A DNA stretch of 64,000 bases, from contig JAHDYR010000025.1 of assembly GCA_019828565.1 (NCBI GenBank), forward strand, positions 960,509-1,024,508, read 5' to 3'. The notes under the pieces were generated by a model that worked only from the letters and a program-made list of their open reading frames with translations, searched no databases and was not told where the DNA came from. Both the position numbers and the translations under genes were made by a program. Below are positions 5,465 to 55,500 of the stretch, piece after piece. Numbering within the stretch: position 1 is the stretch's first letter; the number at the start of each line of letters is the position of its first letter. This stretch comes from Carpediemonas membranifera BICM (Eukaryota; Protista; Fornicata).

Positions 5465-7078
5465 ATGAGCAGCGCTAGTTCCTCGCCATCGGCCATCAAA
5501 GATGCCCTTATCTCCGCATATCGCGCCTCGCTCGTTGTAACGGCCTCCATCTCCGGGGACATCCCCTCGTTGCTCCAGCACGCCTACTCCAGGCACTTCC
5601 GCGAGCAGATGCCCTCGATCCACAACAACAAGAGCACTGTTACACCAACGAGCGTCCCTTCTCTCGAATCCCTCCTCGCCACGCTCTCCGAGATCCACCC
5701 TCTCGAACCATCCGCGCAAGCCCTCCTCGACCGCGCCCGCTCGATCCTCACCAGCGGCCCCCCGCTGTCCATGAACGTCGAGCTCGCGGATGGCGAGGAG
5801 CTCCCGGTCGCCATGCACACGCTGAACCAGGGCGCGGTGTGGGCGTGTCTGCTGGGTGGCGGGGCCAACCCCGATCTAGAGGACAGGGTGCTGGAGGAGG
5901 CTCGTGAGGTGCAGCCAGATGATATTGAGATGCATAACAGAATCCGCAAGGCTCTCACCCCCGAGGCCAAGTGCCTCTGGTTCCTCTGCCGCAAGTTCTT
6001 CTTCTCGCTGAACGTCGCCGAGAAGGACGGCGAGAGCTATCAGTACACAGTATACGGCGATTGCTACCACCACCTCATGTACATGGGCCGACTCTTCATG
6101 CTCGACACTGACTATCACGCCGCCCTCACCAGGGCCAGGATGCCCAGGGCCCTCGAGGTCTACAGCGACGAGATCACACACATCGCCAGGACACCCAAGG
6201 GTCTGTGGGGCTGGGGTGATAGCGGATATGGTCAGCTGGGGTTCAAGTCATCTGGGTTCGTCGACCCGACCCGCCTCACCTTCCCCAACTGCCCCAAGGT
6301 CGCCGAGCACGAGGCCAGCCTGCCCCCCTGGGAGAAGCAGAGGATGGTGACTGGTGTATCGATAATGAGCGGTCAGACGTTCATCCTCACCCCAGCCGGC
6401 ACTGTCATGGCGGGCAACAAGGCGAATTGGTTCATAGGCGAAGCCGAGAGGGGCAATAGACGTCTGTTCACCCCAGTAGCAGTGCCCACTGGATTTGTCC
6501 CAGATCACATCATGCATGCATGGAACAGCGCTGTCATCCTCTCAATGGGCGATCGGCAGGTGATCAGCGGAGAAAGCTGGAAAGGCCAGCTGGGACTTGG
6601 TCATGAGAATGATATGTCTGGATTCGTCGACTTGCCATTCAGGGTCGACCGGATCATGACTCCTGAAGATGATTTTAACGTCTTCCTCAGTGGCCGCCAG
6701 CTGCTCTTCGCTGGCCGAGTTACACCTCATATCGCCCAGTCGGGCCTGCTGCCTGGGTACAGCGAGGGCGACAAGTGCCTCACAGCCACCCAATTCCGGT
6801 TCCCAGAGAGAGTCAAGGGATTCTTTTGTGACTATGATCTTATCTGGGTCACTGAGGGCCGCACTCATCTATGCGACGGAGAAAACCAGTACAGCGTGCC
6901 TTTTGAGGCGATGGCAGTTGGTATCACAACTCAAGAAGATGAAGCCTTCAGCTCATTCCGCGACGCTACTGGCCAGTTGTTCAGGGTATCCGAGGCTGGC
7001 GCTGAGCCAGTCGAGTGCGAGACGCCCGAGTCGTGGGAAGACATCATTCCCGTCGACATCGACCCGTATGGTTCATAA
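5465..7078 (+). CDS. RCC1-like repeat family copy R1 (intact, 537 aa)
   Basis: RCC1/BLIP-II blade motifs GLWGWGDSGYGQLG and GQLGLGH; no signal peptide; near-identical to other copies. Confidence 0.85.
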   Translation: MSSASSSPSAIKDALISAYRASLVVTASISGDIPSLLQHAYSRHFREQMPSIHNNKSTVTPTSVPSLESLLATLSEIHPLEPSAQALLDRARSILTSGPPLSMNVELADGEELPVAMHTLNQGAVWACLLGGGANPDLEDRVLEEAREVQPDDIEMHNRIRKALTPEAKCLWFLCRKFFFSLNVAEKDGESYQYTVYGDCYHHLMYMGRLFMLDTDYHAALTRARMPRALEVYSDEITHIARTPKGLWGWGDSGYGQLGFKSSGFVDPTRLTFPNCPKVAEHEASLPPWEKQRMVTGVSIMSGQTFILTPAGTVMAGNKANWFIGEAERGNRRLFTPVAVPTGFVPDHIMHAWNSAVILSMGDRQVISGESWKGQLGLGHENDMSGFVDLPFRVDRIMTPEDDFNVFLSGRQLLFAGRVTPHIAQSGLLPGYSEGDKCLTATQFRFPERVKGFFCDYDLIWVTEGRTHLCDGENQYSVPFEAMAVGITTQEDEAFSSFRDATGQLFRVSEAGAEPVECETPESWEDIIPVDIDPYGS

Positions 7079-7159
7079 ATAGTGACAGCCAACCCCACCC
7101 CAAGTCTCTTAATCATTTATCACTCGCTCAAGCTGGCCCGCTTGTCGGCCCCGCTGCTC

Positions 7160-7577
7160 ATCCGAAAACGCTCTCACGCCCGAGGCCAAGTGCCTCTGGT
7201 TCCTCTGCCGCAAGTTCTTCTTCTCGCTGAACGTCGCCGAGAAGGACGGCGAGAGCTATCAGCGCCCTGTGCCCGACAGATGCTACCACCACCTCATGTA
7301 CATGGGCCGACTCTTCATGCTCGACACTGACTATCACGCCGCCCTCACCAGGGCCAGGATGCCCAGGGCCCTCGAGGTCTACAGCGACGAGATCACACAC
7401 ATCGCCAGGACACCCAAGGGTCTGTGGGGCTGGGGTGATAACGGCTCTGGTCAGCTGGGGTTCGAGTCGTCTGGGTTCGTCGACCCGACCCGCCTCACCT
7501 TCCCCGCCTGCCCCAAGGTCGCCGAGCACGAGGCCAGCCTGCCCCCCTGGGAGAAGCACAGGATGGTGACTGATGTG
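7160..7577 (+). pseudogene. RCC1-like family internal fragment R2
   Basis: Homologous from ALTPEAKCLWFLCRK to HRMVTDV; truncated at both ends. Confidence 0.85.
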
Positions 7578-10383: not shown

Positions 10384-11993
10384 TTATGAACCATACGGGT
10401 CGATGTCGACGGGAATGATGTCTTCCCACGACTCGGGCGTCTCGCACTCGACTGGCTCAGCGCCAGCCTCGGATACCCTGAACCACTGGCCAGTAGCGTC
10501 GCGGAATGAGCTGAAGGCTTCATCTTCTTGAGTTGTGATACCAACTGCCGTCGCCTCAAAAGGCACGCTGTACTGGTTTTCTCCGTCGCATAGATGAGTG
10601 CGGCCCTCAGTGACCCAGATAAGATCATAGTCACAAAAGAATCCCTTGACTCTCTCTGGGAACCGGAATTGGGTGGCTGTGAGGCACTTGTCGCCCTCGC
10701 TGTACCCAGGCAGCAGGCCCGACTGGGCGATATGAGGTGTAACTCGGCCAGCGAAGAGCAGCTGGCGGCCGCTGAGGAAGACGTTGAAGAATAATTCAAA
10801 GGCTATGATCCGGTCGACCCTGAATGGCAGCTCCTCGAAGCCGGTCATCTCGTTCTCGTGACCGAGACCCAGCCGGCCATTCTCGTTCCATCCGCCGATC
10901 ACCTGCCGATCGCCCATTGACAGGATAACAGTGTAGAATGAATCCACGATGTGATCTGCGACAAAGCCAGTGGGTACGGCGACTGGGTGGAAGAGGTGCC
11001 TGTTCTCGTCCTCGACTGTGCCGACAAACGCTTTCGCATCCGCACCAGCCATGACAGTGCCGACCGGAGTGAAGATGAACGTTCGAGCTCTTATCAGCGA
11101 TACACCAGTCACCATCCTGTGCTTCTCCCAGGGGGGCAGGCTGGCCTCGTGCTCGGCGACCTTGGGCAGGCGGGGAAGGTGAGGCGGGTCGGGTCGACGA
11201 ACCCAGATGACTTGAACCCCAGCTGACCATATCCGCTATCACCCCAGCCCCACAGACCCTTGGGTGTCCTGGCGATGTGTGTGATCTCGTCGCTGTAGAC
11301 CTCGAGGGCCCTGGGCATCCTGGCCCTGGTGAGGGCGGCGTGATAGTCAGTGTCGAGCATGAAGAGTCGGCCCATGTACATGAGGTGGTGGTAGCAATCG
11401 CCGTATACTGTGTACTGATAGCTCTCGCCGTCCTTCTCGGCGACGTTCAGCGAGAAGAAGAACTTGCGGCAGAGGAACCAGAGGCACTTGGCCTCGGGGG
11501 TGAGAGCCTTGCGGATTCTGTTATGCATCTCAATATCATCTGGCTCCTTCTCTCGAGCCTCCTCCAGCACCCTGTCCTCTAGATCGGGGTTGGCTCCGCC
11601 ACCCAGCAGACACGCCCACACCGCGCCCTGGTTCAGCGTGTGCATGGCGATCGGGAGCTCCTCGCCGTCCGCGAGCTCGACGTTCATGGACAGCGGGGGG
11701 CCACTGGTGAGGATCGAGCGGGCGCGGTCGAGGAGGGCTTGCGCGGATGGTTCGAGAGGGTGGATCTCGGAGAGCGTGGCGAGGAGGGATTCGAGAGAAG
11801 GGACGCTCGTTGGTGTAGCAGTGCTCTTGTTGTTGTGGATCGAGGGCATCTGCTCGCGGAAGTGCCTGGAGTAGGCGTGCTGGAGCAACGAGGGGATGTC
11901 CCCGGAGATGGAGGCCGTTACAACGAGCGAGGCGCGGAATACGGAGATAAGCGCATCTTTGATGGCCGATGGCGAGGAACTAGCGCTGCTCAT
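10384..11993 (-). pseudogene. RCC1-like family copy R3 (one frameshift)
   Basis: Full-length homology; split by a 1-nt deletion at 11164..11166 into ORFs 11109..12002 and 10384..11115. Confidence 0.85.
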
Positions 11994-12517
11994 TGGTCCC
12001 AACGCTCAGTTCGGTAGTTGCTCAAATTCTGACTGCCGACTCGCCGACCACCGACGCCAGCTGCGAAGCAGGCGTGTCGCGCGAGTCATGCTCACAGTGG
12101 AGAGCCAACTAGATCATTTCCCAAGCTGCCGAGGGGCCTCTGAACTCTGCCGTGTGAAGGCCTCCCACACTGGTCAAGTTTCGGCAAGCGCGTCGGGTAC
12201 AATGTTGGCTGGTGCTCACTCCACATGCAGCAATCCAGCTCGAGAAGACCCCAAACACCTAGTAGCCTTTATTAACATCTACAAGCGACACGAGGTCATC
12301 TCTTCCCTGTGCTATCCGCAGTATATTCTGGGCGATCGGCTCAAAGTACCACTCCTGGGTCATGCTGTCCGCCATGGGGAGCCATGCACGGTGCGGGGAG
12401 AGTACAATGTTGGGCAGGGTATCAAAGGGGTGGGTGAAGGGGAGCGTGTCGTCGTGGTGCCTGGCCACGGATACATTGCAGAAGCGAGGAATACTATTCA
12501 TGTAATTCGTCAAGTAG

Positions 12518-14356
12518 TCAACTATCTATCGGATTGTGACTCCGACAACGGCGCAAAGGGCAGTCAGTCCGGACCATCCGTTGGTCTTGCTCATAGACGT
12601 CGACCGGGGTGACCTCAGCAGTGCAAGGAGGCGGCCTACCACACTCGATCAGCTCTTTCCCATCCTTTTTCAGCCCGCGCCAGCGCCCGGCACTGTCATG
12701 GATGTAAGAGGAGCAGGGTTCCCTGGAACCGATGCAGCGGTCATGCCAGGCCACTGCCGTAGTCACAATGTCAAGGCTGACTGGCACACGATCGCTGTCG
12801 GTGACATGGGTCGCCCCATTGCTGATCCAGACAACCATACGCTCGTTAGAAAAGAAGCCCGAGACATGGGATGAGAACTGGAGCGGCGTGGCAGTGAGGC
12901 ATTTCTCGCCCTGCTGGTATCCTGGAAGCAGGCCTGACTGGGCGATGTGCTCTGGGACCCAGCCGGAGAAAAGAAGCCGACTGTCAGCGAGGAAAATGTT
13001 CCAGCTGTTGCCGTGACCCAGCATCAGGTCGACCCCGAAGGGAAGCTCCTGGAACCCACACATCTCATCGTTGTGCCCGAGTCCCAACTGGCCATTCCAG
13101 TTGCGACCGCAAATCATCTGTCGATCGCCAGAAGACAGAATGACAGTTGAGCAAGCTGCCATCACATATTGTGGCACAAAGTGATCTGGAACAATGACAA
13201 GGCGGAAGAGGCTGGCCGACTTCCCGACGGAGCCGACGAAATGCCAGGATTCATAGCCAGACATCACCACGCCGAGAGGGGTGAGGATGAAGGTGCCGCC
13301 GAAGCACAGCGACACACCGGTCACCACCCTGTGCTTCTCCCAGGGGGGCAGGCTGGCCTCGAGCTCGGCGACCTTGGGGCAGGCGGGGAAGGTGAGGCGG
13401 GTCGGGTCGACGAACCCAGATGACTTGAACCCCAGCTGGCCATATTCGTTGTAGCCCCAGCCCCACATGCCCTTGGGGGTCCTGGCGATGTGGGCGAGGT
13501 GACCATCAAACTCGTGGCTGTAGACCTCGAGGGCCCTGGGCATCCTGGCCCTGGTGAGGGTGGTGTGGTGCCTTGTGTCGAGCATGAAGAGTCGGCCCAT
13601 GTACATGCGGTGATAATAGCTATTGTAATGCCCGGTATGTTGGTACTTCTCGCCGTCCTTCTCGGCGACGTTCAGCGAGAAGAAGAACTTGCGGCAGAGG
13701 AACCAGAGGCACTTGGCCTCGGGGGCGAGAGCCTTGCGGATCTTGTCGTGCATCGTGGTCTTGCCGGGCCACTTCATTCGAGCATCATCCAGCACCGTGT
13801 CCTCGAGGTCGGGGTTGGCCCCCGCCTCGACGAGCAGCGCCCAGATCGTACCCTGCAAAAGCGTGAAGATGCAGGGCGGGAGCTCCTCGCCGGGCGCCAG
13901 TGGGATGTCCATGCTCACACCGGGCCTCCCAGAAGAAAGGATGTTGACCGCTTCGGTACGCGTAACCTGACCAGTACAGGAGTGGTCCTCGGGCAGGTCC
14001 TCTCCGAACTCAAGAACGTTGGCCTCACGAACCATCTTTCCAGTGTTGCAAGGCATCTCTGCCTTCTGGGTGGGCAAGTTGGCATGTAGATGGAAAGTTT
14101 TGCCGCTTTCGATGCCTTCGGGGCTCGTAGGCTTCGTAACGCACATCGTCTCGAGACGTGAACGGATTTCGTCCAGTCTGGCTAACAAAGGCTTGATCTC
14201 CCAATCAGAAAGCTGTATACCACGTAACATATTAAGATTACGCCCAATGCCTTCGATGTGGGCATCCAGTTGCTCAAGTTCCTCTTGCCCTGCCATGAAT
14301 GATGTGAGCAGGCAATCGACTTCCAACCGAGTCGCTTCTGGTGATGAGCTCGGCAA
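12518..14356 (-). CDS. Divergent RCC1-like family member R4 (intact, start uncertain)
   Basis: Central EAKCLWFLCRKFFF...WEKHRVVTGVS near-identical to the family; unique coiled-coil-like N-terminus and diverged C-terminus. Confidence 0.8.
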   Translation of the reverse strand: MPSSSPEATRLEVDCLLTSFMAGQEELEQLDAHIEGIGRNLNMLRGIQLSDWEIKPLLARLDEIRSRLETMCVTKPTSPEGIESGKTFHLHANLPTQKAEMPCNTGKMVREANVLEFGEDLPEDHSCTGQVTRTEAVNILSSGRPGVSMDIPLAPGEELPPCIFTLLQGTIWALLVEAGANPDLEDTVLDDARMKWPGKTTMHDKIRKALAPEAKCLWFLCRKFFFSLNVAEKDGEKYQHTGHYNSYYHRMYMGRLFMLDTRHHTTLTRARMPRALEVYSHEFDGHLAHIARTPKGMWGWGYNEYGQLGFKSSGFVDPTRLTFPACPKVAELEASLPPWEKHRVVTGVSLCFGGTFILTPLGVVMSGYESWHFVGSVGKSASLFRLVIVPDHFVPQYVMAACSTVILSSGDRQMICGRNWNGQLGLGHNDEMCGFQELPFGVDLMLGHGNSWNIFLADSRLLFSGWVPEHIAQSGLLPGYQQGEKCLTATPLQFSSHVSGFFSNERMVVWISNGATHVTDSDRVPVSLDIVTTAVAWHDRCIGSREPCSSYIHDSAGRWRGLKKDGKELIECGRPPPCTAEVTPVDVYEQDQRMVRTDCPLRRCRSHNPIDS

Positions 14357-15950: not shown

Positions 15951-17582
15951 ATGAGCAGCGCTAGTTCCTCGCCATCGGCCATCAAAGATGCGCTTATCTC
16001 CGTATTCCGCGCCTCGCTCGTTGTAACGGCCTCCATCTCCGGGGACATCCCCTCGTTGCTCCAGCACGCCTACTCCAGACACTTCGGCGAGCAGATGCCC
16101 TCGATCCACAACAACAAGAGCACTGTTACACCAACGAGCGTCCCTTCTCTCGAATCCCTCCTCGCCACGCTCTCCAAGATCCCCCCTCTCGAACCAACCG
16201 CGCAAGCCCTCCTCGACCGCGCCCGCTCGATCCTCACCAGTGGCCCCCCGCTGTCCATGAACGTCGAGCTCGCGGACGGCGAGGAGCTCCCGGTCGCGAT
16301 GCACACGCTGAACCAGGGCGCGGTGTGGGCTTGTCTCATGGGTGGTGGGGCCAACCCCGATCTAGAGGACAGGGTGCTGGAGGAGGCTCGGGAGAAGCAA
16401 CCACATATGACCGATATTCATAACAGAATCCGCAAGGCTCTCACCCCCGAGGCCAAGTGCCTCTGGTTCCTCTGCCGCAAGTTCTTCTTCTCGCTGAACG
16501 TCGCCGAGAAGGACGGCAAGAGCTATCAGTGCAGCTGTAGTGGATACTACCACCACCACATGTACATGGGCCGACTCTTCATGCTCCGCACTGACTATCA
16601 CGCCGCCCTCACCAGGGCCAGGATGCCCAGGGCCCTCGAGGTCTACAGCAACGAGATCACACACATCGCCAGGACACCCAAGGGTCTGTGGGGCTGGGGT
16701 GATAACGGCTCTGGTCAGCTGGGGTTCGAGTCGTCTGGGTTCGTCGACCCGACCCGCCTCACCTTCCCCGCCTGCCCCAAGGTCGCCGAGCACGAGGCCA
16801 GCCTGCCCCCCTGGGAGAAGCACAGGGTGGTGACCGGTGTGTCGCTGATAAGAGCTCGAACGTTCATCTTCACTCCGGTCGGCACTGTCATGGCTGGTGC
16901 GGATGCGAAAGCGTTTGTCGGCACAGTCGAGGACGAGAACAGGCACCTCTTCCACCCAGTCGCCGTACCCACTGGCTTTGTCGCAGATCACATCGTGGAT
17001 TCATTCTACACTGTTATCCTGTCAATGGGCGATCGGCAGGTGATCGGCGGATGGAACGAGAATGGCCGGCTGGGACTCGGTCACGAGAACGAGATGACCG
17101 GCTTCGAGGAGCTGCCATTCAGGGTCGACCGGATCATAGCCTTTGAATTATTCTTCAACGTCTTCCTCAGCGGCCGCCAGCTGCTGTTCGCCGGCGAAGT
17201 TCCCCGTCCTATCGCCCAGTCGGGCCTGCTGCCTGGGTACAGTGAGGATGACAAGTGCCTCACAGCCACCCAGCTCCGGTTCCCAGAGAGAGTCAAGGGG
17301 TTCTGTTGCATGTTTTTGAGACTCCTCTGGGTCACTGAGGGCCGCACTCATCTGCGCAACCGTGACAAACAGTACTGTATGCCTTTTGAGGCGACGTCAT
17401 TTGGCGGCAGAGTAATACGTGGCAGAGAAGTCTACTCATTACGTGACGCCGCCGGCCAGTGGTTTATGGAGAAGACATTGCCTGATGATATAGCTGGGGT
17501 AACTAGGCTGGTCAAGTGCAAAGTACCTACTTCACAATGGGAGATCATCCCAGTCGACGTCGACCCGTGGGCCGAGCAGTAA
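15951..17582 (+). CDS. RCC1-like family copy R5 (intact, 543 aa)
   Basis: Full ORF with family framework and its own cassette combination. Confidence 0.85.
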   Translation: MSSASSSPSAIKDALISVFRASLVVTASISGDIPSLLQHAYSRHFGEQMPSIHNNKSTVTPTSVPSLESLLATLSKIPPLEPTAQALLDRARSILTSGPPLSMNVELADGEELPVAMHTLNQGAVWACLMGGGANPDLEDRVLEEAREKQPHMTDIHNRIRKALTPEAKCLWFLCRKFFFSLNVAEKDGKSYQCSCSGYYHHHMYMGRLFMLRTDYHAALTRARMPRALEVYSNEITHIARTPKGLWGWGDNGSGQLGFESSGFVDPTRLTFPACPKVAEHEASLPPWEKHRVVTGVSLIRARTFIFTPVGTVMAGADAKAFVGTVEDENRHLFHPVAVPTGFVADHIVDSFYTVILSMGDRQVIGGWNENGRLGLGHENEMTGFEELPFRVDRIIAFELFFNVFLSGRQLLFAGEVPRPIAQSGLLPGYSEDDKCLTATQLRFPERVKGFCCMFLRLLWVTEGRTHLRNRDKQYCMPFEATSFGGRVIRGREVYSLRDAAGQWFMEKTLPDDIAGVTRLVKCKVPTSQWEIIPVDVDPWAEQ

Positions 17583-24956: not shown

Positions 24957-26102
24957 TTATGTCCCATACGGGTCGATGTCGACGGGAATGATGTCTTCCC
25001 ACGACTCGGGCGTCTCGCACTCGACTGGCTCAGCCACCCCATCTGACCCACCCACCATTTCAAACCACTGGCCGGTGGAGTCGCGGAATGAGAGGACCCA
25101 GCTGCCGCTAACCCGTCTTCTACCAAGAGCGGTTGCCTCAAAGAGCACACAGTACTGTTTGTCACGGTTGCGCAGATGAGTGCGGCCCTCAGTGACCCAG
25201 GCGAGAGTCGTGTCATCAGACTGGAACCCCTTGACCTTCTCTCGGAACCGGAGCGGGGTGGCTGTGATGCAGAAGTCATCCTCACTGTACCCAGACAGCA
25301 GGCCCGACTGGGCGATAGGACGGGGAACTTCGCCGGCGAACAGCAGCTGGCGGCCGCTGAGGAAGACGTTGAAGAATAATTCAAAGGCTATGATCCGGTC
25401 GACCCTGAATGGCAGCTCCTCGAAGCCGGTCATCTCGTTCTCGTGACCGAGTCCCAGCCGGCCATTCTCGTTCCATCCGCCGATCACCTGCCGATCGCCC
25501 ATTGACAGGATAACAGTGTAGAATGAATCCACGATGTGATCTGCGACAAAGCCAGTGGGTACGGCGACTGGGTGGAAGAGGTGCCTGTTCTCGTCCTCGA
25601 CTGTGCCGACAAACGCTTTCGCATCCGCACCAGCCATGACAGTGCCGACCGGAGTGAAGATGAACGTTCGAGCTCTTATCAGCGACACATCGGTCACCAT
25701 CCTGTGCTTCTCCCAGGGGGGCAGGCTGGCCTCGTGCTCGGCGACCTTGGGCAGGCGGGGAAGGTGAGGCGGGTCGGGTCGACGAACCCAGATGACTTGA
25801 ACCCCAGCTGACCATATCCGCTATCACCCCAGCCCCACAGACCCTTGGGTGTCCTGGCGATGTGTGTGATCTCGTTGCTGTAGATCTCGAGGGCCCTGGG
25901 CATCCTGGCCCTGGTGAGGGCGGCGTGATAGTCAGTGTCGAGCATGAAGAGTCGGCCCATGTACATGAGGTGGTGGTAGCATCTGTCGGGCACAGGGCGC
26001 TGATAGCTCTCGCCGTCCTTCTCGGCGACGTTCAGCGAGAAGAAGAACTTGCGGCAGAGGAACCAGAGGCACTTGGCCTCGGGCGTGAGAGCGTTTTCGG
26101 AT
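24957..26102 (-). pseudogene. RCC1-like family copy R6 (5'-truncated, frameshifted)
   Basis: Same 5' junction as R2; 1-nt deletion at 25749..25751; complete C-terminus DIDPYGT. Confidence 0.85.
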
Positions 26103-26357
26103 GAGCAGCGGGGCCGACAAGCGGGCCAGCTTGAGCGAGTGATAAATGATTAAGAGACTTGGGGTGGGGTTGGCTGTCACTATTTATGAACCATACGGGT
26201 CGATGTCGACGGGAATGATGTCTTCCCACGACTCGGGCGTCTCGCACTCGACTGGCTCAGCGCCAGCCTCGGATACCCTGAACAACTGGCCAGTAGCGTC
26301 GCGGAATGAGCTGAAGGCTTCATCTTCTTGAGTTGTGATACCAACTGCCATCGCCTC

Positions 26358-26459
26358 TGTTGGTTCATCAATAGATTATTTAATAGTCTTGAGTCGTCCA
26401 GCTCGACACATGGGTGTCGAGCTCTATTCTTTGTAAAGCTTTGTTCTCACGAACCCACA
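26358..26459 (+). repeat. 5' LTR of Gypsy-A
   Basis: Direct repeat of 32394..32495; contains hairpin AGCTCGACAC-ATGG-GTGTCGAGCT. Confidence 0.97.
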
Positions 26460-26474
26460 GTAACGTTACTTACA

Positions 26475-29400
26475 ATGACTGAGGACAAGGGTCCGTTATG
26501 TACTCAACCAGAGATTAATGCTCTGCTTTCGTTTAAGGAGAAACTCGATCGCCATGTCCGAACGGGCGGAAAACGCCGACTTATCAAGCGTTTGGGTCCG
26601 GCTGTCACCTCATACTGTGCAGCAGTTGGTGTAGACGTAGCCAAGACGTACAAGAGCGCGAAGCACAACACAGTGACGGGCGAGAAGCGTAAGAAACATG
26701 AGAGAGAGGACCTCGTTTTCAGAGCGATTGCTAACGCAATTAAGCCCACTGATCCGATCCTAGAGCGCCGTCTTTTCCAGCTAACGACCCAGGGTATTGA
26801 CGTGGGACGTCTCTCACTCTATGCCGACAGATTCATCAGCCGCAAGGCCGTCTTGGCTCCCTCTTTCTCCGACGCCGTGATGCGCAGCATGTTCGTGAAG
26901 GGAATCCAGGACGAGGACCTCCGTAGGGAGGTCAAGGAGGCGGCTACAGGGCTTGACCTTAACAGCACCATCCAGGTCGCTCTCCAGACGTGCAAGCGTC
27001 TCCAAGAGGCTGCGATGATTACTTCCAGGACCATCAAGTCCGATTCTCAGCCTCGAAACCGCCCTCCTAAGGACCAGCGCGCAAGCCATTCTCGAGGTCT
27101 GCGCCGACAGGGCGGCCCGCCTCACCCGGGTGAGCACCAGTCTCATGGCAAGCACCAGTACCGGGGAGCCCAGTCTGAAATGCAGAGAAGTCAGCAGACC
27201 GGCTCAAGCACCGATCATCAGAGCACCAGCCGTACCATCGTGTGCTACAACTGCGGCAAGTCCGGTCACACATCGCGCCAGTGTCGGAACCCGAAGACTG
27301 TCTGCAGCAAGTGCGGTAAGCAGGGACATCAAGACAAGTTCTGTCGGGGTACTTCAGTAAACCCCCAGGCTTGTTCATCCTTTTCTCGTGCACCCGCTCA
27401 TGTCCTGACATCGTTGAGTCAGACACACAGCAACGCGCTCCCGATAGTAACAGCAGAGGTTCCGGTCGGTAATGATCACAGTGTGCAATGGGAGCGTGTA
27501 CTTTTCGACTGCGGGGCGGATATTTGCTTGGTGAACCCCCAGTCGGCAACCGCTGCTGAACTTATTCCGACGAAGCTCAGTCAACCTATCGTCATCAAGA
27601 CTCCAGGGGGATCTATTGAGTCCGACGTTTGCTATGAGATTCCCCTTCTCATGCATAAGTCACCTTTCACTCCAAAGGCACTGTCGACTACTGTCGCCGC
27701 ATACGGAGTTGAATGCATCTACGACCTTCTATTGTCGTACCCAACGATGGTTGAGTGGGGCATCCTGCCCAGTGTCGCGGAATCTCAAGCGAGCCGGGAC
27801 TCTGACGATATGGAACCGTCCGTCCCCCCAATGGACGCGATGCAGTCCTACACTATGTCAACAGATTTTACAGCGATGCATGCGCGAATCATCGCCAAGT
27901 TCAGCCGTTGCTTCGAGGAGCGTGAGGGGTTTTCTGCCTTAGAGCCTTATGACCTGATCTTGAAGGAGGACCGAGTAGTAGCGTCCAGGTCAAATTACAT
28001 CCCCTCACCAGAAGCAGGGTCTGTTTGATGAGCACGTCCGGGAGCTGTTAGCCAAGAAGTATATTGAGGCGAGTTTCTCTCCGTACTCGTCCCCAGCTCT
28101 CCTCGTCCCGAAGGGCCGAGACAGAACTCGTATGGTTGTCGATTTCAGAAGGATCAACGACCTGACTGAGCCGTTTGATTACCCGATCCCAGAGGTTCAA
28201 GCGTGCCTCGCACGGTTGGCAGGAGCTAAGATCTTCGCCACGATTGACCTTTCGAAGGGTTATCATCAAGTCAAGTTGTCCGAAAGGTCGAGACAATACA
28301 CTGCGTTCCAGACCCCACGAGGCAAGTTCCAGTATACGGGCATGCCGTTTGGATTGAAAAACGCTGGGGCGCATTTCCAGTTTGCAATTGAACGGGGATT
28401 CCACGATCTACTTGGTACCGCGTGTATCATATATATTGACGACATTATAATTTTCGGCCGCACAGAGCAAGAGTACTTGTCCAACTTGAACAAGGTGTTG
28501 GCGAGGGCCGAAGAGTTGAAACTCAGCCTCAACAAGGAGAAGTCACACTTTGGACTCGCAGAAGTCGAGTTCTTAGGCTGGGTGGTGTCGGGTACAGGAT
28601 TTAGAATGGCGCCAGACCGCATTCGGGATGTTGAGACGCTGCGTGTCCCGAAGACGAAGAAGGCCGCTCAAGCCCTAATGGGATTCTTGAACTTCATGAG
28701 AGATTTTTGTGCCAGGTTTTTCGAGGATCGTGCACCCTTTAGCTCAAGCCGCGTGTGGCAAGGCACCTCCCGACGGCAGCGATCAGGTCGAGGCTTTGGC
28801 GCAGGTCAAAGATCTGCTGTGTCAGGCTCCCGCCCTCGAACACTTCGATGTTACCCGTGAGCACGTCGTCATGACTGACGCGTCAGACCTTGGAATTGGC
28901 GGAGTGTTGCTACAAGACGGTAAGCCGGTGTCATACATGTCCAAGTCTTTCAACGATGTGCAGACGAGATGGAGCACAATTGAACAGGAGGCGTATGCAA
29001 TCGTTTCCGCGTTGCAGAGGTGGCGCAGGTTCTTGTGTTGGACACCATTCACATTGCTGACTGATCATCGCAATCTTGTGTTTATGTCGCGTTCTTCCAA
29101 CTCCAAGGTTCAACGGTGGTACGAATCAATATCTGATCTTGATTTCACGATCAAACATGTGGCCGGAGTGGATAACAGTGCAGCCGATGGTCTCAGTCGC
29201 GTGTTTGCGGCATCGGCAGATCGGTTGCCAGTGGCGTCTGAGACGGAGATAGCTGAGGCACACAGACACGGGCAAGCTCACCTGCCACTGCATACCACGA
29301 TACAATTCTTGAGGACACATGGCAAGAGGGCGCCCGTGGATCAGGTGGCGAGGGTGATCGACAGATGTCCGGTATGTCAACTCACAGCAAAACCAGCTGA

Positions 29401-30479
29401 AGCCGCCAGGGCATACTTACATACAGCCGGACTCAGGCCGTTCATGAAGGTAGCAATGGACACTATCGGTCCGTTGCCCGAGTCGCTCGGATACAAGTTC
29501 ATTTTTAGTAGTAGTCGATATGGCTTCGAGGTGGACCGAGCTCATTCCGCTGAAGACAACGAGAGCCGACGAAGCTGTCAGAGCATTTGCTGACCAGTGG
29601 ATACTCAGGTATGGAGTCCCTCGAGTCCTCCAAACAGACGGAGGCAAGCAGTTTGTCAACAAGCTGTTCAAGGACTTGTCCGTCCGAGTTGGCTTTTCAA
29701 TCCATACAACCACTCCATATCATCCACAGTCAAATGGAGTGGTCGAACGAGCGAACAGCAGAGTCGAGCGTATTCTGAGGGCGCGGCAGTACGAGCTGAG
29801 GTCGGAGCTGTGGTCGGAGTCGTTGCCAGTCGCACAGTACATTGTCAACGCGACACCACACTCAGCAACGCGTTTAACCCCAGCAGAGGTGATTTTTGGT
29901 AGTGATCTGCGCGTACCGGCCGACATGCTAATCGTCAAAGAACTGGGTGAGAAGGCGGTCAGCCAACCAGCGAGCAACGTAGCTGCTGCCAAACTCGCTC
30001 GAGAGCTCGCTGAAGCACGTATTAAGGCAATGCACGCTGACGCTCTCAGCAAGCTGCCCCCTCCTGAACCAATTACGTCTGAGTTTGTATTGGTCAAATA
30101 CCCGAATGGGCCACCATCAAAGTTGGCTGCAGGGTGGCGAGGCCCCATGCAACTGATCCAGCCTATCATGAGGAATGACTTTCCTGTTGGTTACTGGGTT
30201 AGAGATGTCAATACGAGGACCGAATTCCAGGTCGCGTCCGAGAGGGTCAGACCATTTTCAGGCGAGCTGTCCATGCAACATGCCCAAGAGCTAGCAGCAG
30301 TGACGATCGGCGAGTATGTCGTGGAGTCGATATACGAAGCAACGCATGAGCGCAGACTCAGCGATCGGCAGTTCCACGTCCGATGGGCAGGGTACGAGCC
30401 TTCGGAAGATACGTGGGAGCCGTACCAGAACGTTAAGGGATGCGAAGCGTTGGATATATATCTGGGGAAGGCCGAATAA
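26475..30479 (+). CDS. Gag-Pol polyprotein of Gypsy-A (three apparent 1-nt frameshifts)
   Basis: Two CCHC knuckles; PR LFDCGAD; RT YIDD; RNase H TDASDLGIGGVL; IN HHCC plus MDTIGP, TDGGKQF, VERAN; chromodomain FHVRWAGYEPSEDTWEP. Breaks near 28000, 28705 and 29503 each fall in a homopolymer run. Confidence 0.93.
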
Positions 30480-30504
30480 ATGGCCCCCAAGCATCAGAAA
30501 CTGT

Positions 30505-31626
30505 TTATTCGCAAGTGTCACAACGGACGTTACCATCGAGGGCAACGTCGTCGGCGAGGTAAGACTCGTAAGACAGATGCTCAGTGAGGAACTGGGCAAC
30601 GGCAGGGTGAGTCTGCATGCGCCGAGTAGCGATGGCAATGCTGCTCACATTGGGGCATTCCTCATAACTGACATGCAGGCGCAGAAGACCAGGGGCGTCA
30701 AAACGATAATGCCAAACACGCGAGACCGTGAAGGCTGCAGAAGTCATGTCTTGCAGAGTCAGCGACGGGGCGCGGTCAGCAGTAACCGGCATGAAGCCTG
30801 ACAGAAGACTGAACTCTGCGTCGTCGAAGGAAGCGCCGCTACGCATGCGAGCGAAGTACTGACGAGCGAACTCAGCGCAATCAGCGCGGGTGAGGATACC
30901 GAGGGCCTCTCCCATGTGCAGCACAAAATATAGGTTGACATCGTGGCCGAGCATGACAGCACGGAAGACATGAGGACGCATGGTGACGATGCTGAGGCCA
31001 GAGCGATTCTCGATCTCTTGCTTGAGCGCGTTCGGCACATACGCGCGTTTGTCTCGAACAGCAGTGAGGTAGGCTGAAACGATGGCAGCATCAGTCGAAT
31101 CGCGACGTATGGAGAGGTAAGCCGACATCGCCTGGAGTACGATAGCGTCACGGCAGAGATCAGCGCCGGCGTCATGCGAGTGCACTGCAGCGGAAGCGCG
31201 GGTGTAAGAGTGCAGCCGGTTGTCGGTGAGCAGCAGTAACTCAGTCCGGGGAGAGTTCCAGTAGTAGCTGACTGCCTGCCGGGTGACGAGTTCCACGTAG
31301 CCAGAGAGGGATGGCGGGGTGTCGTCCGACTCGGAGTCAGACTCATTGTCGGTTGGGTCAGGAGAAGCCGGAAGGTAGCGTAGGTCGACGGCGTTAACGC
31401 TCTCGCTGTCAGATGCAGAACTGGTTACGGCGCCAGCAAGTTCCTCTGGGACATTAGGGACGTTTTGGCGCCTAGGAGCACGTCGCGGCTGGTAAGGGGT
31501 GAACAGCTCGAGGTAGGAACCAGTTTCAGAGATATGGCGACGGAGGAGACGGCAAAATTGCATTCTCGAAGTGTTAGTCGTAAGACGATTTAGAATAGTT
31601 TCCACAGCGGCGTCGAAATCCCCCAT
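30505..31626 (-). CDS. Antisense accessory ORF inside Gypsy-A (373 aa, unknown function)
   Basis: ATG-initiated, uninterrupted, tail-to-tail with pol and within the LTR boundaries. Confidence 0.7.
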   Translation of the reverse strand: MGDFDAAVETILNRLTTNTSRMQFCRLLRRHISETGSYLELFTPYQPRRAPRRQNVPNVPEELAGAVTSSASDSESVNAVDLRYLPASPDPTDNESDSESDDTPPSLSGYVELVTRQAVSYYWNSPRTELLLLTDNRLHSYTRASAAVHSHDAGADLCRDAIVLQAMSAYLSIRRDSTDAAIVSAYLTAVRDKRAYVPNALKQEIENRSGLSIVTMRPHVFRAVMLGHDVNLYFVLHMGEALGILTRADCAEFARQYFARMRSGASFDDAEFSLLSGFMPVTADRAPSLTLQDMTSAAFTVSRVWHYRFDAPGLLRLHVSYEECPNVSSIAIATRRMQTHPAVAQFLTEHLSYESYLADDVALDGNVRCDTCE

Positions 31627-32393
31627 GAGCTGTGATCGTCTAGAAAGTCGACTTTCCAGAAAGCAAAAAATGCGAAATCGATGAAACGCAATGGTTACGC
31701 AACAATGCTGTTCAGAAGTGGAACATAGAGTTGTTTACATGGTGGAACTGATGTTGTTATTCAATATAGCCGCGTTTTCGGGATCCAAAAAGTGTTTCCG
31801 GCGGTGCAAAAACGAAAAAGTGCCATATCTCGCGAACGAGAAGGAATTGGAGCCTCTTAACCCGTTTTTTTGAACGCCGTGTAAGATTAGGCGGAATGTA
31901 ACCAACCTCTGGTAAGAATTGACATGGGGACATCGATGGCACCTAAAAGTGCGCCATTTGACCCTTTCAGAATCGTCGGGTATGTTTCAAAGACTTTCAA
32001 GAGGGGCAGGACCCCAGGTAAGGATACCCATAACATAGCGCGCTAATACAGTGGTACCACGCAAGATTTGATCAGATAATATTAGGTAATTTAGATTTGG
32101 TAGTGAGGTAAGCATATCTCAGAAACGTGACTGGACATCACGCCGGGCATAAGACACAGGGTTTTTATAGCCAGTCTGGTCAACGGGTATCCGGTGAACT
32201 CGAAAGTCCCGAGCTCACAACGGTTCAGGCAATAGGGCTTAGTCCATTGCCAACTCCGGCTCCATGGCGAGTCCCCATGGAAGCGACGGTTACTGGAGCT
32301 TGTATCTGGGCAATTCACCCGGACCAAGCACCTAGCACACCCTTCATAATAGTGTTGAGTTTTTTGATGCTCTACCGGAGCATGGGAGGGAAG

Positions 32394-32495
32394 TGTTGGT
32401 TCATCAATAGATTACTTAATAGTCTTGAGTCGTCCAGCTCGACACATGGGTGTCGAGCTCTATTCTTTGTAAAGCTTTGTTCTCACGAACCCACA
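32394..32495 (+). repeat. 3' LTR of Gypsy-A
   Basis: Preceded by PPT, followed by TSD CCTC. Confidence 0.97.
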
Positions 32496-32895
32496 CCTCA
32501 AAAGGCACGCTGTACTGGTTTTCTCCGTCGCATAGATGAGTGCGGCCCTCAGTGACCCAGATAAGATCATAGTCACAAAAGAATCCCTTGACTCTCTCTG
32601 GGAACCGGAGTTGGGTGGCTGTGAGGCACTTGTCGCCCTCGCTGTACCCAGGCAGCAGGCCCGACTGGGCGATAGGACGGGGAACTTCGCCGGCGAACAG
32701 CAGCTGGCGGTCGCAGAGGAAGACGTTAAAATCATCTTCAGGAGTCATGATCCGGTCGACCCTGAATGGCAAGTCGACGAATCCAGACATATCATTCTCA
32801 TGACCAAGTCCCAGCTGGCCTTTCCAGCTTTCTCCGCTGATCACCTGCCGATCGCCCATGGAGAGGATGACAGTCACTGCATGCAACGGACCCAC

Positions 32896-33019
32896 TGTGG
32901 TCTGTCAAGACTTAGAAGAACTTTTAGTAAAAGCAAAGAAGAGAGGGTTTGACCCTGCTGTGGTAAATATGGCAATAATAAATATATCAACTATGTAAAC
33001 AATGGGTAGGACCCTGACA
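32896..33019. mobile_element. Solo LTR (124 bp) of another family
   Basis: AT-rich TGT...ACA insert with TSD CCAC (32892..32895, 33020..33023); absent from the equivalent site in R9. Confidence 0.8.
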
Positions 33020-34255
33020 CCACATGCATGATGTGATCTGGGACAAAGCCACCGGGCACGGCGACTGGGTGGAAGAGGTGTTTGTTTTTCTCCCGCTCGA
33101 CCGGGTCGACAAACTTTTCTGAACTGCCACCAGCCATGACAGTGCCGACTGGGGTGAGTATGAACGTCTGCCATCTCTCCATCGACACATCGGTCACCAT
33201 CCTGTGCTTCTCCCAGGGGGGCAGGCTGGCCTCGTGCTCGGCGACCTTGGGGCAGTTGGGGAAGGTGAGGCGGGTCGGGTCGACGAACCCAGATGACTTG
33301 AACCCCAGCTGACCATATCCGCTATCACCCCAGCCCCACAGACCCTTGGGTGTCCTGGCGATGTGTGTGATCTCGTTGCTGTAGACCTCGAGGGCCCTGG
33401 GCATCCTGGCCCTGGTGAGGGCGGCGTGATAGTCAGTGTCGAGCATGAAGAGTCGGCCCATGTACATGAGGTGGTGGTAGCAATCGCCGTATACTGTGTA
33501 CTGATAGCTCTCGCCGTCCTTCTCGGCGACGTTCAGCGAAAAGAAGAACTTGCGGCAGAGGAACCAGAGGCACTTGGCCTCGGGGGTGAGAGCCTTGCGG
33601 ATTCTGTTATGCATCTCAATATCATCTGGCTCCTCCTCTCGTGCCTCCTCCAGCACCCTGTCCTCGAGGTCTGGGTTGGCCCCGCCGCCCAGCAGACACG
33701 CCCACACCGCGCCCTGGTTCAGCGTGTGCATGGCGATCGGGAGCTCCTCGCCGTCCGCGAGCTCGACGTTCATGGACAGCGGGGGGCCGCTGGTGAGGAT
33801 CGAGCGGGCGCGGTCGAGGAGGGCTTGCGCGGATGGTTCGAGAGGGGGGAGCTTGGAGAGCGTGGCGAGGAGGGATTCGAGAGAAGGGGCGCTCGTTGGT
33901 GTAACAGTGCTCTTGTTGTTGTGGATCGAGGGCATCTGCTCGCCGAAGTGCCTGGAGTAGGCGCATTGGATCAACGAGGGGATGTCCCCAGAGATGGAGG
34001 CCGTTTCGGTGAGCGAGGCGCGGAATACGGAGATAAGGGCATCTCTGATGGCCGATGGCGAGGAACTAGCGCTGCTCATGGCTTTCAGCGCTCAGTTCGG
34101 CGATGGCCAAATTCTGACTGCCGACTCGCCGACCACCGACGCCAGCTGCGGAGTCAACAGGAGATGAGGCATGACCATCGCCTGCACCGACATACACTGG
34201 ATGATTTACGAATTTGTCCACTCTTTGTGCACAATGTGTTGTCAAGATACCGACT

Positions 34256-35633: not shown

Positions 35634-35861
35634 CTGCCCTTCAGAGACGACCGGATCATACCAGACTTTTCGTTTAACGTCTTCCTCAGCGACCGTCAGC
35701 TGCTTTTCGCCGGCGAAGTTCCCGATCACATCGATCAGTCGGGCCTTCGGTATGGATACCGAGAGGACGACAACTGCCTTATAGCCACCCCGCTCCGGTT
35801 CCCAAATTGGGTCACAGGATGACTGAGCAGAGACAATTATGTACTCCGTGTGACCGAGGGC
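35634..35861 (+). pseudogene. Decayed RCC1-like family relic
   Basis: Translates to LPFRDDRIIPDFSFNVFLSDRQLLFAGEVPDHIDQSGL...CLIATPLRFP. Confidence 0.8.
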
Positions 35862-37102: not shown

Positions 37103-38701
37103 TTATGAACCATACGGGTCGATGTCGACGGGAATGATGTCTTCCCACGACTCGGGCGTCTCGCACTCGACTGGCTCAGCGCCAGCCTCGGATACCCTGA
37201 ACAACTGGCCAGTAGCGTCGCGGAATGAGCTGAAGGCTTCATCTTCTTGAGTTGTGATACCAACTGCCGTCGCCTCAAAAGGCACGCTGTACTGGTTTTC
37301 TCCGTCGCATAGATGAGTGCGGCCCTCAGTGACCCAGATAAGATCATAGTCACAAAAGAATCCCTTGACTCTCTCTGGGAACCGGAGCTGGGTGGCTGTG
37401 AGGCACTTGTCGCCCTCGCTGTACCCAGGCAGCAGGCCCGACTGGGCGATAGGACGGGGAACTTCGCCGGCGAACAGCAGCTGGCGGCCGCTGAGGAAGA
37501 CGTTGAAGAATAATTCAAAGGCTATGATCCGGTCGACCCTGAATGGAAGCTCCTCGAAGCCGGTCATCTCGTTCACATGCCCGAGTCCCAGCCGGCCATT
37601 CTCGTTCCATCCGCCGATCACCTGCCGATCGCCCATTGACAGGATAACAGTGTAGAATGAATCCACGATGTGATCTGCGACAAAGCCAGTGGGTACGGCG
37701 ACTGGGTGGAAGAGGTGCCTGTTCTCGTCCTCGACTGTGCCGACAAACGCTTTCGCATCCGCACCAGCCATGACAGTGCCGACCGGAGTGAAGATGAACG
37801 TTCGAGCTCTTATCAGCGACACATCGGTCACCATCCTGTGCTTCTCCCAGGGGGGCAGGCTGGCCTCGAGCTCGGCGACCTTGGGCAGGCGGGGAAGGTG
37901 AGGCGGGTCGTGTCGACGAACCCAGATGACTGGAACCCCAGCTCACCATTGTAGCAAGCGCCCCAGCCCCACAGACCCTTGGGCGTCCTGGCGACGTGGG
38001 TGATCCAGTTGCTGTAGACCTCGAGGGCCCTGTGCATCCTGGCCCTGGTGATAGTCAGTGTCGAGCATGAAGAGTCGGCCCATGTACATGCGGTGGTGGT
38101 AGCATCTGTCGGGCACAGGGCGCTGATAGCTCTCGCCGTCCTTCTCGGCGACGTTCAGCGAGAAGAAGAACTTGCGGCAGAGGAACCAGAGGCACTTGGC
38201 CTCGGGGGTGAGAGCCTTGCGGATTCTGTTATGCATCTCAATATCATCTGGCTCCTCCTCTCGTGCCTCCTCCAGCACCCTGTCCTCGAGGTCGGGGTTG
38301 GCCCCGCCGCCCAGCAGACACGCCCACACCGCGCCCTGGTTCAGCGTGTGCATGGCGACCGGGAGCTCCTCGCCGTCCGCGAGCTCGACGTTCATGGACA
38401 GCGGGGGGCCGCTGGTGAGGATCGAGCGGGCGCGGTCGAGGAGGGCTTGCGCGGATGGTTCGAGAGGGGGGAGCTTGGAGAGCGTGGCGAGGAGGGATTC
38501 GAGAGATGGGGCGCTCGTTGGTGTAACAGTGCTCTTGTTGTTGTGGATCGAGGGCATCTGCTCGCCGAAGTGCCTGGAGTAGGCGCATTGGATCAACGAG
38601 GGGATGTCCCCGGAGATGGAGGCCGTTGCGGTGAGCGAGGCGCGGAATACGGAGATAAGGGCATCTCTGATGGCCGATGGCGAGGAACTAGCGCTGCTCA
38701 T
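37103..38701 (-). pseudogene. RCC1-like family copy R8
   Basis: Full length with an 11-nt deletion near 38050 and a 1-nt deletion at 37883..37885. Confidence 0.87.
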
Positions 38702-46014: not shown

Positions 46015-47625
46015 ATGAGCAGCGCTAGTTCCTCGCCATCGGCCATCAGAGATGCGCTTATCTCCGTATTCCGCGCCTCGCTCGTTGTAACGGCCTCCAT
46101 CTCCGGGGACATCCCCTCGTTGCTCCAGCACGCCTACTCCAGACACTTCGGCGAGCAGATGCCCTCGATCCACAACAACAAGAGCACTGTTACACCAACG
46201 AGCGTCCCTCCTCGCCACGCTCTCCAAGATCCCCCCTCTCGAACCAACCGCGCAAGCCCTCCTCGACCGCGCCCGCTCGATCCTCACCAGCGGCCCCCCG
46301 CTGTCCATGAACGTCGAGCTCGCGGACGGCGAGGAGCTCCCGGTCGCCATGCACACGCTGAACCAGGGCGCGGTGTGGGCGTGTCTCATGGGTGGTGGGG
46401 CCAACCCCGACCTCGAGGACAGGGTGCTGGAGGAGGCAAGAGAGGAGGAGCCAGATGATATTGAGATGCATAACAGAATCCGCAAGGCTCTCACCCCCGA
46501 GGCCAAGTGCCTCTGGTTCCTCTGCCGCAAGTTCTTCTTCTCGCTGAACGTCGCTGAGAAGGACGGCGAGAGCTATCAGTACACAGTATACGGCGATTGC
46601 TACCACCACCTCATGTACATGGGCCGACTCTTCATGCTCGACACTGACTATCACGCCGCCCTCACCAGGGCCAGGATGCCCAGGGCCCTCGAGGTCTACA
46701 GCGACTGGACCACCCACATCGCCAGGACACCCAAGGGTCTGTGGGGCTGGGGTGATAGCGGATATGGTCAGCTGGGGTTCAAGTCATCTGGGTTCGTCGA
46801 CCCGACCCGCCTCACCTTCCCCGCCTGCCCAAGGTCGCCGAGCACGAGGCCAGCCTGCCCCCCTGGGAGAAGCACAGGGTGGTGACCGATGTGTCGATGG
46901 AGAGATGGCAGACGTTCATACTCACCCCAGTCAGCACTGTCATGGCTGGTGGCAGTTCAGAAAAGTTTGTCGACCCGGTCGAGCGGGAGAAAAACAAACA
47001 CCTCTTCCACCCAGTCGCCGTGCCCGGTGGCTTTGTCCCAGATCACATCATGCATGTGGGTCCGTTGCATGCAGTGACTGTCATCCTCTCCATGGGCGAT
47101 CGGCAGGTGATCAGCGGAGAAAGCTGGAAAGGCCAGCTGGGACTTGGTCATGAGAATGATATGTCTGGATTCGTCGACTTGCCATTCAGGGTCGACCGGA
47201 TCATGACTCCTGAAGATGATTTTAACGTCTTCCTCTGCGACCGCCAGCTGCTGTTCGCCGGCGAAGTTCCCCGTCCTATCGCCCAGTCGGGCCTGCTGCC
47301 TGGGTACAGCGAGGGCGACAAGTGCCTCACAGCCACCCAACTCCGGTTCCCAGAGAGAGTCAAGGGATTCTTTTGTGACTATGATCTTATCTGGGTCACT
47401 GAGGGCCGCACTCATCTATGCGACGGAGAAAACCAGTACAGCGTGCCTTTTGAGGCGACGGCAGTTGGTATCACAACTCAAGAAGATGAAGCCTTCAGCT
47501 CATTCCGCGACGCTACTGGCCAGTTGTTCAGGGTATCCGAGGCTGGCGCTGAGCCAGTCGAGTGCGAGACGCCCGAGTCGTGGGAAGACATCATTCCCGT
47601 CGACATCGACCCGTATGGTTCATAA
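46015..47625 (+). pseudogene. RCC1-like family copy R9
   Basis: 14-nt deletion near 46207 and 1-nt deletion at 46828..46830; leader cut by the CRE-like element. Confidence 0.87.
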
Positions 47626-54272: not shown

Positions 54273-54467
54273 CGATTTGATCGGTGTTTGATCGATCATT
54301 GTAAAATGTAGCAGCACAGATTTGTTTATTTAGAGTGACACTAGAAAGCTGTTGTCCGACAAGCAGCACACTGATAACATCTCAGTCACTGTCTTTCTCC
54401 AGGCATTTTTAGACAAGACGACACGTTGTGGCAACTACTAAAGAACAGACAAGTGTTTATCAATTGA

Positions 54468-55500
54468 TTACTCAACGTGCCCGAGTCCCAGCCGGCCTTT
54501 CCAGCTTTCTCCGCTGATCACCTGCCGATCGCCCATTGAGAGGATGACAGCGCTGTTCCATGCATGCATGATGTGATCTGGGACAAATCCAGTGGGCACT
54601 GCTACTGGGGTGAACAGACGTCTATTGCCCCTCTCGGCTTCGCCTATGAACCAATTCGCCTTGTTGCCCGCCATGACAGTGCCGACTGGGGTGAGTATGA
54701 ACGTCTGCCATCTCTCCATCGACACATCGGTCACCACCCTGTGCTTCTCCCAGGGGGGCAGGCTGGCCTCGTGCTCGGCGACCTTGGGGCAGTTGGGGAA
54801 GGTGAGGCGGGTCGGGTCGACGAACCCAGATGACTTGAACCCCAGCTGACCATATCCGCTATCACCCCAGCCCCACAGACCCTTGGGCGTCCTGGCGATG
54901 TGTGTGATCTCGTTGCTGTAGACCTCGAGGGCCCTGGGCATCCTGGCCCTGGTGAGGGCGGCGTGATAGTCAGTGTCGAGCATGAAGAGTCGGCCCATGT
55001 ACATGTGGTGGTGGTAGCAATCGCCGTATACTGTGTACTGATAGCTCTCGCCGTCCTTCTCGGCGACGTTCAGCGAGAAGAAGAACTTGCGGCAGAGGAA
55101 CCAGAGGCACTTGGCCTCGGGGGTGAGAGCCTTGCGGATTCTGTTATGCATCTCAATATCATCTGGCTCCTCCTCTCGTGCCTCCTCCAGCACCCTGTCC
55201 TCGAGGTCGGGGTTGGCCCCGCCGCCCAGCAGACACGCCCACACCGCGCCCTGGTTCAGCGTGTGCATGGCGATCGGGAGCTCCTCGCCGTCCGCGAGCT
55301 CGACGTTCATGGACAGCGGGGGGCCGCTGGTGAGGATCGAGCGGGCGCGGTCGAGGAGGGCTTGCGCGGTTGGTTCGAGAGGGGGGATCTTGGAGAGCGT
55401 GGCGAGGAGGGATTCGAGAGAAGGGACGCTCGTTGGTGTAACAGTGCTCTTGTTGTTGTGGATCGAGGGCATCTGCTCGCGGAAGTGCCTGGAGTAGGCG
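54468..55500 (-). pseudogene. RCC1-like family copy R10 (3'-truncated, 5' interrupted by Gypsy-B)
   Basis: Homology from HAYSRHF to LGLGH; breaks at 55500/55501. Confidence 0.87.

Follow-up and report, generated by a model that had tools for sequence, protein, structure and literature searches.

The window analysed here is a 64,000-nucleotide stretch of the Carpediemonas membranifera genome, near the end of contig JAHDYR010000025.1 in assembly GCA_019828565.1 (about 960-1,024 kb, as placed by gene numbering), and carries a cluster of genes encoding an RCC1-like propeller protein. Carpediemonas membranifera, a marine flagellate of the metamonads, is haploid and free-living, and its genome is predicted to hold 8,300 genes; the origin recognition complex (ORC) and Cdc6 are missing, and a replication start via Dmc1-dependent recombination has been proposed (PMC8516963). 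Self-BLAST and alignment showed that one intronless gene occurs ten times in the window, as copies or fragments, with one small fragment in addition (Table 1). A first-pass annotation, made from the sequence alone, had described ten copies with a near-identical framework. Ten are present, but R2 is only a 411-nt fragment (R2f), R4 is divergent (67% nt identity) and a 187-nt fragment had been missed. Its statement that R1, R4 and R5 alone have an intact reading frame was correct.

Duplication leaves the copies with ragged ends and with flanks picked up along the way, and copies are lost through indels and retrotransposon insertion. R7 is a single gene, broken up by a 120-bp insert and a long terminal repeat (LTR) retrotransposon. 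The insert has GT/AG-compatible ends and is treated as an intron in NCBI model J8273_3605. The 6.1 kb retrotransposon, a young Ty3/gypsy element with a chromodomain, has very short LTRs of 102 bp that differ at one base, and a 4-bp target-site duplication (TSD), GAGG. An antisense 373-aa open reading frame (ORF; 30505-31626) without a Pfam match lies between its integrase and 3′ LTR. The junction of R1 with R2f is also present at R7/R6, the exact run being 472 nt. Inactivating indels are common to neighbouring copies, with each frameshift limited to one neighbourhood, and the broken copies R3, R7, R8 and R9 retain the ATG as well as the 5′ leader. NCBI models in which splicing spans frameshifts (P0002, P0230, P0070, P0020) were placed on the window, with the R7 pieces separated by N; P0002 also supplied one row of an alignment.

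Table 1 Gene copies and associated features. Positions are those of the window unless another locus is named.
Feature	Position	Strand	Remarks
5′ leader	5385..5464	+	conserved, ~80 nt, in most copies; outer edge ragged (5268-5425 equivalents), terminus not fixed
R1	5465..7078	+	intact, 537 aa; helical domain 1-188, 7-blade RCC1-like propeller 190-532
R2f	7167..7577	+	411-nt fragment, codons 162-298; joins R1 3′ flank at short microhomology
R3	10384..11993	-	full length; 1-bp deletion ~nt 828, common to R3, R6, R8, R9
R3 5′ flank	12023..12465	-	443 nt, identical to flank at L001:8163-8605 ~45 kb away; takes in start of unrelated gene
R4	12518..14356	-	intact ORF, 612 aa; divergent paralogue; N-terminus differs
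R5	15951..17582	+	intact, 543 aa
R6	24957..26095	-	5′-truncated, from codon 162 on; has 1-bp deletion
R7, 3′ piece	26184..26353	-	
Ty3/gypsy chromodomain LTR retrotransposon	26358..32495	+	within R7; pol frameshifted
R7, middle piece	32496..32897	-	400 nt same as R9
AT-rich insert in R7	32898..33021	-	~120 bp; no second copy of the insert in the DNA examined
R7, 5′ piece	33022..34079	-	includes ATG
Degenerate fragment	35634..35820	+	187 nt, blade 5 region
R8	37103..38701	-	full length; 11-bp and 1-bp deletions
R9	46015..47625	+	full length; 14-bp and 1-bp deletions
R10	54476..55502	-	both ends truncated, codons 39-375
Fused gene models	L004:15693-19542; proteins P0037, P0049, P0122, P0134, P0137, P0239		true fusion or annotation run-through

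The homologues of R1 all come from Carpediemonas membranifera. A profile of the N-terminal domain matched at least 191 proteins, and all those checked are from this flagellate; no relatives of the domain were found beyond this species, the lower-ranked matches being generic RCC1-repeat proteins. We estimate about 200 copies, which would be more than 2% of the genes in the genome. The genes are intronless, placed singly or in small groups among housekeeping genes in either orientation, and most dense on contigs 25, 67 and 2; among 44 aligned genomic copies, approximately one third are intact. No published description of the family was found in a literature search that left out most subscription journals, nor did “Carpediemonas” and “RCC1” occur together in one paper in the literature searched. 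In several gene models a family copy is continuous with an unrelated domain, which may be RhoGEF, VPS37, prenyltransferase or ThiF. Two family copies adjoin a gene for a 2,339-aa FG-GAP/ephrin-receptor-like protein (L007:1042-8164), which contains about nine tandem 768-bp units of ~99% identity.

Exchange of tracts between copies

All of the alternative loop cassettes listed in the first-pass annotation are present as exact nucleotide alleles. At two adjacent sites the four possible combinations occur as reported (TPEDDF with RVTPH in R1, AFELFF with RVTPH in R3, AFELFF with EVPRP in R5, R6 and R8, and TPEDDF with EVPRP in R7 and R9), and the link between MERWQ and NKANW in R10 is present in the DNA. 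The pairwise homoplasy index (PHI), which had been suggested for the aligned copies, was strongly significant, with z from -15 to -31 in four independent sets (window, elsewhere on contig 25, contig 67); the 8 close copies of the window gave z = -14.7. Four-gamete incompatibility among six near-full copies was 0.03 for sites <10 nt apart and reached 0.66-0.69 for those >500 nt apart. Exact-tract painting revealed that tracts of 25-400 nt, each an exact match to some other copy, tile the close window copies almost wholly. R1, for example, is identical to R3 over nt 455-822, R10 over 935-1123, R7/R9 over 1124-1224 and R3 over 1252-1447. Even R4, though divergent, has exact loop alleles in common with copies elsewhere. 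The data support recombination among copies as the source of the mosaics.

Reassortment of cassettes, as originally proposed, is therefore far beyond chance by PHI, but the cassettes are not discrete: they are unbounded units, with tract edges falling anywhere in the conserved framework, N-terminal domain and flanks included. Framework-only sites were incompatible at a fraction of 0.46, and N-terminal sites were incompatible too. Because breakpoints lie in conserved framework, the divergent top-face turns travel as apparent cassettes. Exchange, in tracts of 30-400 nt, is multidirectional and takes place mainly with neighbours within ~100 kb, at times between contigs. Shared tracts cover 46% of the gene for copies within 10 kb, 15% at 200-400 kb and 11% between contigs, and sharing follows genomic distance (Mantel rho -0.66, p = 0.0005).

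The 443-nt flank of R3 is free of differences from its distant counterpart, and the adjoining coding region is mostly 73-100% identical per 60-nt window, with most loops differing. From this juxtaposition we infer that replacement of tracts is far faster than point mutation, provided that the flank did not arrive through a later event. Broken copies lie 98-100% inside shared tracts and are no less mosaic than intact ones; they are therefore recipients too. They probably belong to the allele pool, in which a dedicated donor class is not visible. Between R7 and R8, two tandem paralogues of an unknown membrane protein, unrelated to the family (34688-35527 and 35869-37053, ~66% identity), have a single exact tract of 68 nt in common close to the C-terminus, which hints that the region as a whole is prone to ectopic conversion.

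Protein fold and variable face

The AlphaFold2 model (predicted local distance difference test (pLDDT) score 88.7) comprises a helical domain (residues 1-188) followed by a propeller (190-532) with seven four-stranded RCC1-type blades, the fold of an RCC1-like domain (RLD). In a Foldseek search of the PDB the top 44 matches were RLDs (best E 3e-10, template-modelling score 0.35/0.48), the best being UVR8, RPGR, WBSCR16, RCC1 and HERC RLDs; the viral list was headed by giant-virus RCC1 and F-box-RCC1 proteins. The RCC1 repeat profile PF00415 scored over its cut-off in R4 and R5 and slightly under it in R1. The GQLG motif is retained in two blades only, and PF25390 fell far under its cut-off. 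The propeller assignment of the first-pass annotation thus agrees with model, structural search and profile. The family resembles UVR8, RPGR, HERC RLDs, RCC1 and giant-virus F-box-RCC1 proteins in its seven-bladed RCC1-type propeller, but differs in its novel N-terminal helical domain and in an identity of just 10-17%. Moreover, a face that is conserved in those proteins is hypervariable here, in ~200 recombining paralogues.

In four-stranded propellers, the A-B and C-D turns lie on one common face. Faces were assigned from secondary structure by blade topology, not from coordinates. Mean entropy was 2.25 bits in A-B turns and 1.92 in C-D turns, compared with 0.62 in B-C turns and 0.63 in D-A linker ends on the opposite face (p = 3e-19); 28 of the 40 most variable sites map to the A-B/C-D face and 1 to the opposite face. 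The same one-face variability was seen again in 36 distant paralogues. One variable turn aligned with the G-N-x-x-G-Q-L-G segment and the second with the GWRHT motif of UVR8 (an A-B turn), a region that forms the UVR8 dimer and COP1-binding face. Blade topology thus places the hypervariable turns on a single propeller face, as had been anticipated at first pass, and one that corresponds to the usual ligand-binding face of UVR8 and related RLDs.

The N-terminal domain of ~190 aa is predicted to fold with confidence (pLDDT 91). Identification as an F-box, BTB, SOCS, HeLo or ankyrin domain is not supported, as there was no significant match, and neither Pfam nor Foldseek gave a match to a NACHT or cell-death domain. 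Matches to a Lin-12 ankyrin chain (E = 1) and an EF-hand protein (E = 0.003) were not used as evidence. At the end of the domain (R1 residues 170-179; window 5972-6001) an L-x-x-x-C motif is conserved, with C175 invariant; by eye it is reminiscent of a BC-box or the end of an F-box, with no profile support. No signal peptide or transmembrane segment was detected in R1 or R5 by Kyte-Doolittle scan (19-aa maxima 1.15 and 1.47), in agreement with the first reading; the R4 maximum of 1.74 falls within the propeller. The family protein is thus predicted to be cytosolic rather than surface-exposed.

Pairwise nonsynonymous differences per site (pN) were 0.40-0.46 in loops and 0.10 in the framework, and the synonymous equivalent (pS) was raised approximately two-fold in loops. 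Recent changes between near-identical local haplotypes comprised 48 nonsynonymous and 3 synonymous changes in loops whose boundaries were in part picked from the entropy profile. When the sites were chosen purely from geometry or from distant paralogues, dN/dS was 1.3-2.3 in the turns (p 0.01-0.24) and 0.5-0.8 for the opposite face, remaining propeller and N-terminal domain; the framework and N-terminal core are under purifying selection (0.06-0.5). As far as these comparisons go, there is moderate support for diversifying selection on the variable face. GC content at third codon positions was 0.51 in loops, 0.81 in the framework and ~0.7 in ordinary genes, which fits GC-biased homogenisation of the framework.

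Evolution and possible role of the family

We consider it reasonably probable that these genes form a Carpediemonas-specific birth-and-death family, in which fast, multidirectional ectopic gene conversion goes together with diversifying selection that acts on a binding face in the cytosol. New loop alleles would come from ordinary point mutations and small indels, with selection then favouring them, steps that are partly shown by the data above. The route of exchange may be gene conversion through homologous recombination, or else template switching, and the proposed recombination-initiated replication of Carpediemonas might enhance it. The variable face could bind fast-changing foreign ligands, such as proteins of viruses, symbionts, prey or selfish elements, while the helical domain might couple to a constant cellular partner. 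A role in conflict or non-self recognition is probable; a function as immune sensor or adaptor is our inference, the N-terminal domain matching none of the F-box, BTB, SOCS, NACHT or cell-death domains. A more elaborate scheme strikes us as rather unlikely: an intracellular immune repertoire, with new faces made within clonal growth by template switching among copies, broken ones included, as a consequence of ORC-less, recombination-initiated replication, and with the N-terminal domain as a new effector or ligase-adaptor module.

Several points weigh against the birth-and-death reading with diversifying selection. The N-terminal domain has no Pfam, PDB-sequence or Foldseek match and no known fold. 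Loop pairwise pN/pS was ~1.0-1.25, with intervals containing 1, and the case for dN/dS above 1 becomes borderline once site sets are unbiased, such that relaxed constraint is possible. The Hudson-Kaplan minimum number of recombination events (Rm) was not in excess of clonal simulations (observed 15, simulated mean 21), while the incompatible fraction of 0.41 was higher than in simulations at fitted rate variation (max 0.30) but did not exceed those at extreme rate variation (max 0.44). Since the Rm simulations are not discriminating, the recombination claim stands on PHI, the distance trend and the exact tracts. Finally, the family is known here from the sequence of one assembly of one isolate.

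Relaxed constraint is central to the view that the mosaics are a by-product of an unstable region in a genome with high ectopic recombination, or of a selfish, self-propagating gene family, with loops drifting and no recognition role. The single copies among housekeeping genes in both orientations, two thirds of them broken, speak for this view, as do the unrelated paralogue pair with an exact tract, the loop pN/pS near 1 with its raised pS, and a contig end rich in retroelements. We nevertheless think it unlikely, if worth keeping in view, given the marked asymmetry of the two propeller faces, the recent nonsynonymous excess in loops, the purifying selection on framework and N-terminal core, and the lack of transposase, fixed ends, terminal inverted repeats (TIRs), TSDs and poly(A). 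The family was rejected as a transposable element, as 5′ and 3′ boundaries are ragged over ~40 copies and no TIR, TSD, poly(A) or transposase/reverse transcriptase (RT) domain is present. A diversity-generating retroelement was also rejected: changes involving A made up 59% in loops and 52% in the framework, matching base composition and thus revealing no adenine bias, self-BLAST found no template repeat, and nearby RTs lie in LTR/LINE-like (long interspersed nuclear element) elements. Mosaics could in addition be chimeras of near-identical repeats introduced by assembly or polishing (ABruijn, Nanopolish, unicycler_polish). An assembly of R9.4 nanopore reads that was polished in rounds with short reads, the little private variation of the window copies, and reliance on one source, with no other assembly or transcriptome in the collection searched, would allow this. 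However, the organism is haploid, with 83x long-read and 150x Illumina short-read coverage (PMC8516963), and the 1.6 kb copies are short relative to long reads and flanked by unique genes. Alleles are set apart by multi-base blocks and by indels of 3-12 nt, copies on another contig with just 79-83% identity carry the same exact tracts, the 1-bp deletion occurs in four window copies only whereas 20 copies of the same context are intact, and sharing follows genomic distance. An artefact is therefore very improbable.

The first-pass annotation had likened the family to Borrelia vlsE, Neisseria pilE/pilS, trypanosome variant surface glycoprotein (VSG) and chicken immunoglobulin, with broken copies as cassette donors. 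In a programmed system of this type, silent and broken copies serve to rewrite one expressed locus, or a few, inside a clone. A dense cluster with ~70% broken copies, exact shared tracts, shuffling apparently much faster than point mutation, and fragments (R2f, R10) that hold usable loop alleles are all compatible with it, and vlsE, pilE and VSG show the same segmental mosaics, with variable regions in a ~90% identical framework. The vls system is characterised by a single expression site, by cassettes that stay silent and by transfer in one direction (PMC11499132). Three intact copies in the window, and many more elsewhere, argue against a single expression site here. The silent cassettes of vlsE, pilE and VSG lack the 5′ end, whereas most broken full-length copies here have leader and ATG; the copies form no dedicated silent array but are interspersed, and broken ones are mosaic as much as or more than intact ones. 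Frameshifts are passed between copies, exchange extends into the N-terminal domain and flanks, and there is no sign of one-way transfer, although a single genome does not show the direction of single events. The products of those systems are surface proteins, unlike the present one, and the organism is free-living. With many copies intact, broken copies acting as recipients and lesions shared, the pseudogene-donor model is not supported, and programmed diversification is quite improbable.

Instead, the birth-and-death family would work like a plant NOD-like receptor (NLR) cluster, the fungal HNWD family or a nematode F-box expansion, and unlike a switchable expression locus; these are its closest working analogues, although it belongs to none of them. 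The F-box and MATH-BTB expansions of nematodes and the NLR clusters of plants are clustered birth-and-death families, with a conserved N-terminal module and a variable binding domain. The present family differs from them in having no F-box, BTB or SOCS match and in its unusually dense exact-tract mosaicism. The HNWD (het-d/het-e) NLRs of Podospora anserina share an intracellular propeller and family-wide exchange that includes pseudogenes. The propeller interaction face of HNWD is under diversifying selection (PMC1805685); the comparable observations here are the borderline turn dN/dS and the counts of recent loop changes given above. HNWD genes exchange near-identical WD repeats both internally and with one another; in the present family the blades are unlike each other, and matching positions of separate genes swap. 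HNWD proteins also have a NACHT/HET domain, absent here by Pfam and Foldseek, and the present family is ~20 times larger.

Little is known of the ways in which free-living protists detect viruses, symbionts and other invaders, and the family is a concrete candidate for such recognition. To our knowledge, an RCC1 propeller was not previously known as a variable receptor. The family also offers a readout for the hypothesis of recombination-initiated replication (PMC8516963), which predicts high, measurable ectopic conversion at these loci.

Other features of the window

Between R2f and R3 lies a separate, canonical RCC1-repeat protein (7811-10447, minus strand; 878-aa ORF) with an apparent N-terminal hydrophobic leader, a Cys-rich segment and a C-terminal transmembrane helix. 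An intronless D-lactate dehydrogenase gene of bacterial appearance sits between R4 and R5 (14619-15632), for which lateral transfer is possible; it has no close paralogy to the dehydrogenase in L001. A C-terminal match to Nse4, the SMC5/6 kleisin (41099-42058), and a tubulin-cofactor-B-like CAP-Gly gene (42111-43052) lie inside the cluster.

Retroelement remains include an RT-bearing, non-LTR-like element (43535-45557), a second Ty3-like gag/pol beside R10 (55562-59632) and, at the contig end, a LINE with APE endonuclease and RT (60881-63795) and marked strand skew. No telomere repeats were seen within the window. A 230-bp intergenic sequence is duplicated at 34256-34485 and 49428-49657 with 99.6% identity, and a 42-bp piece of it also occurs in L005; it is possibly a small mobile element.

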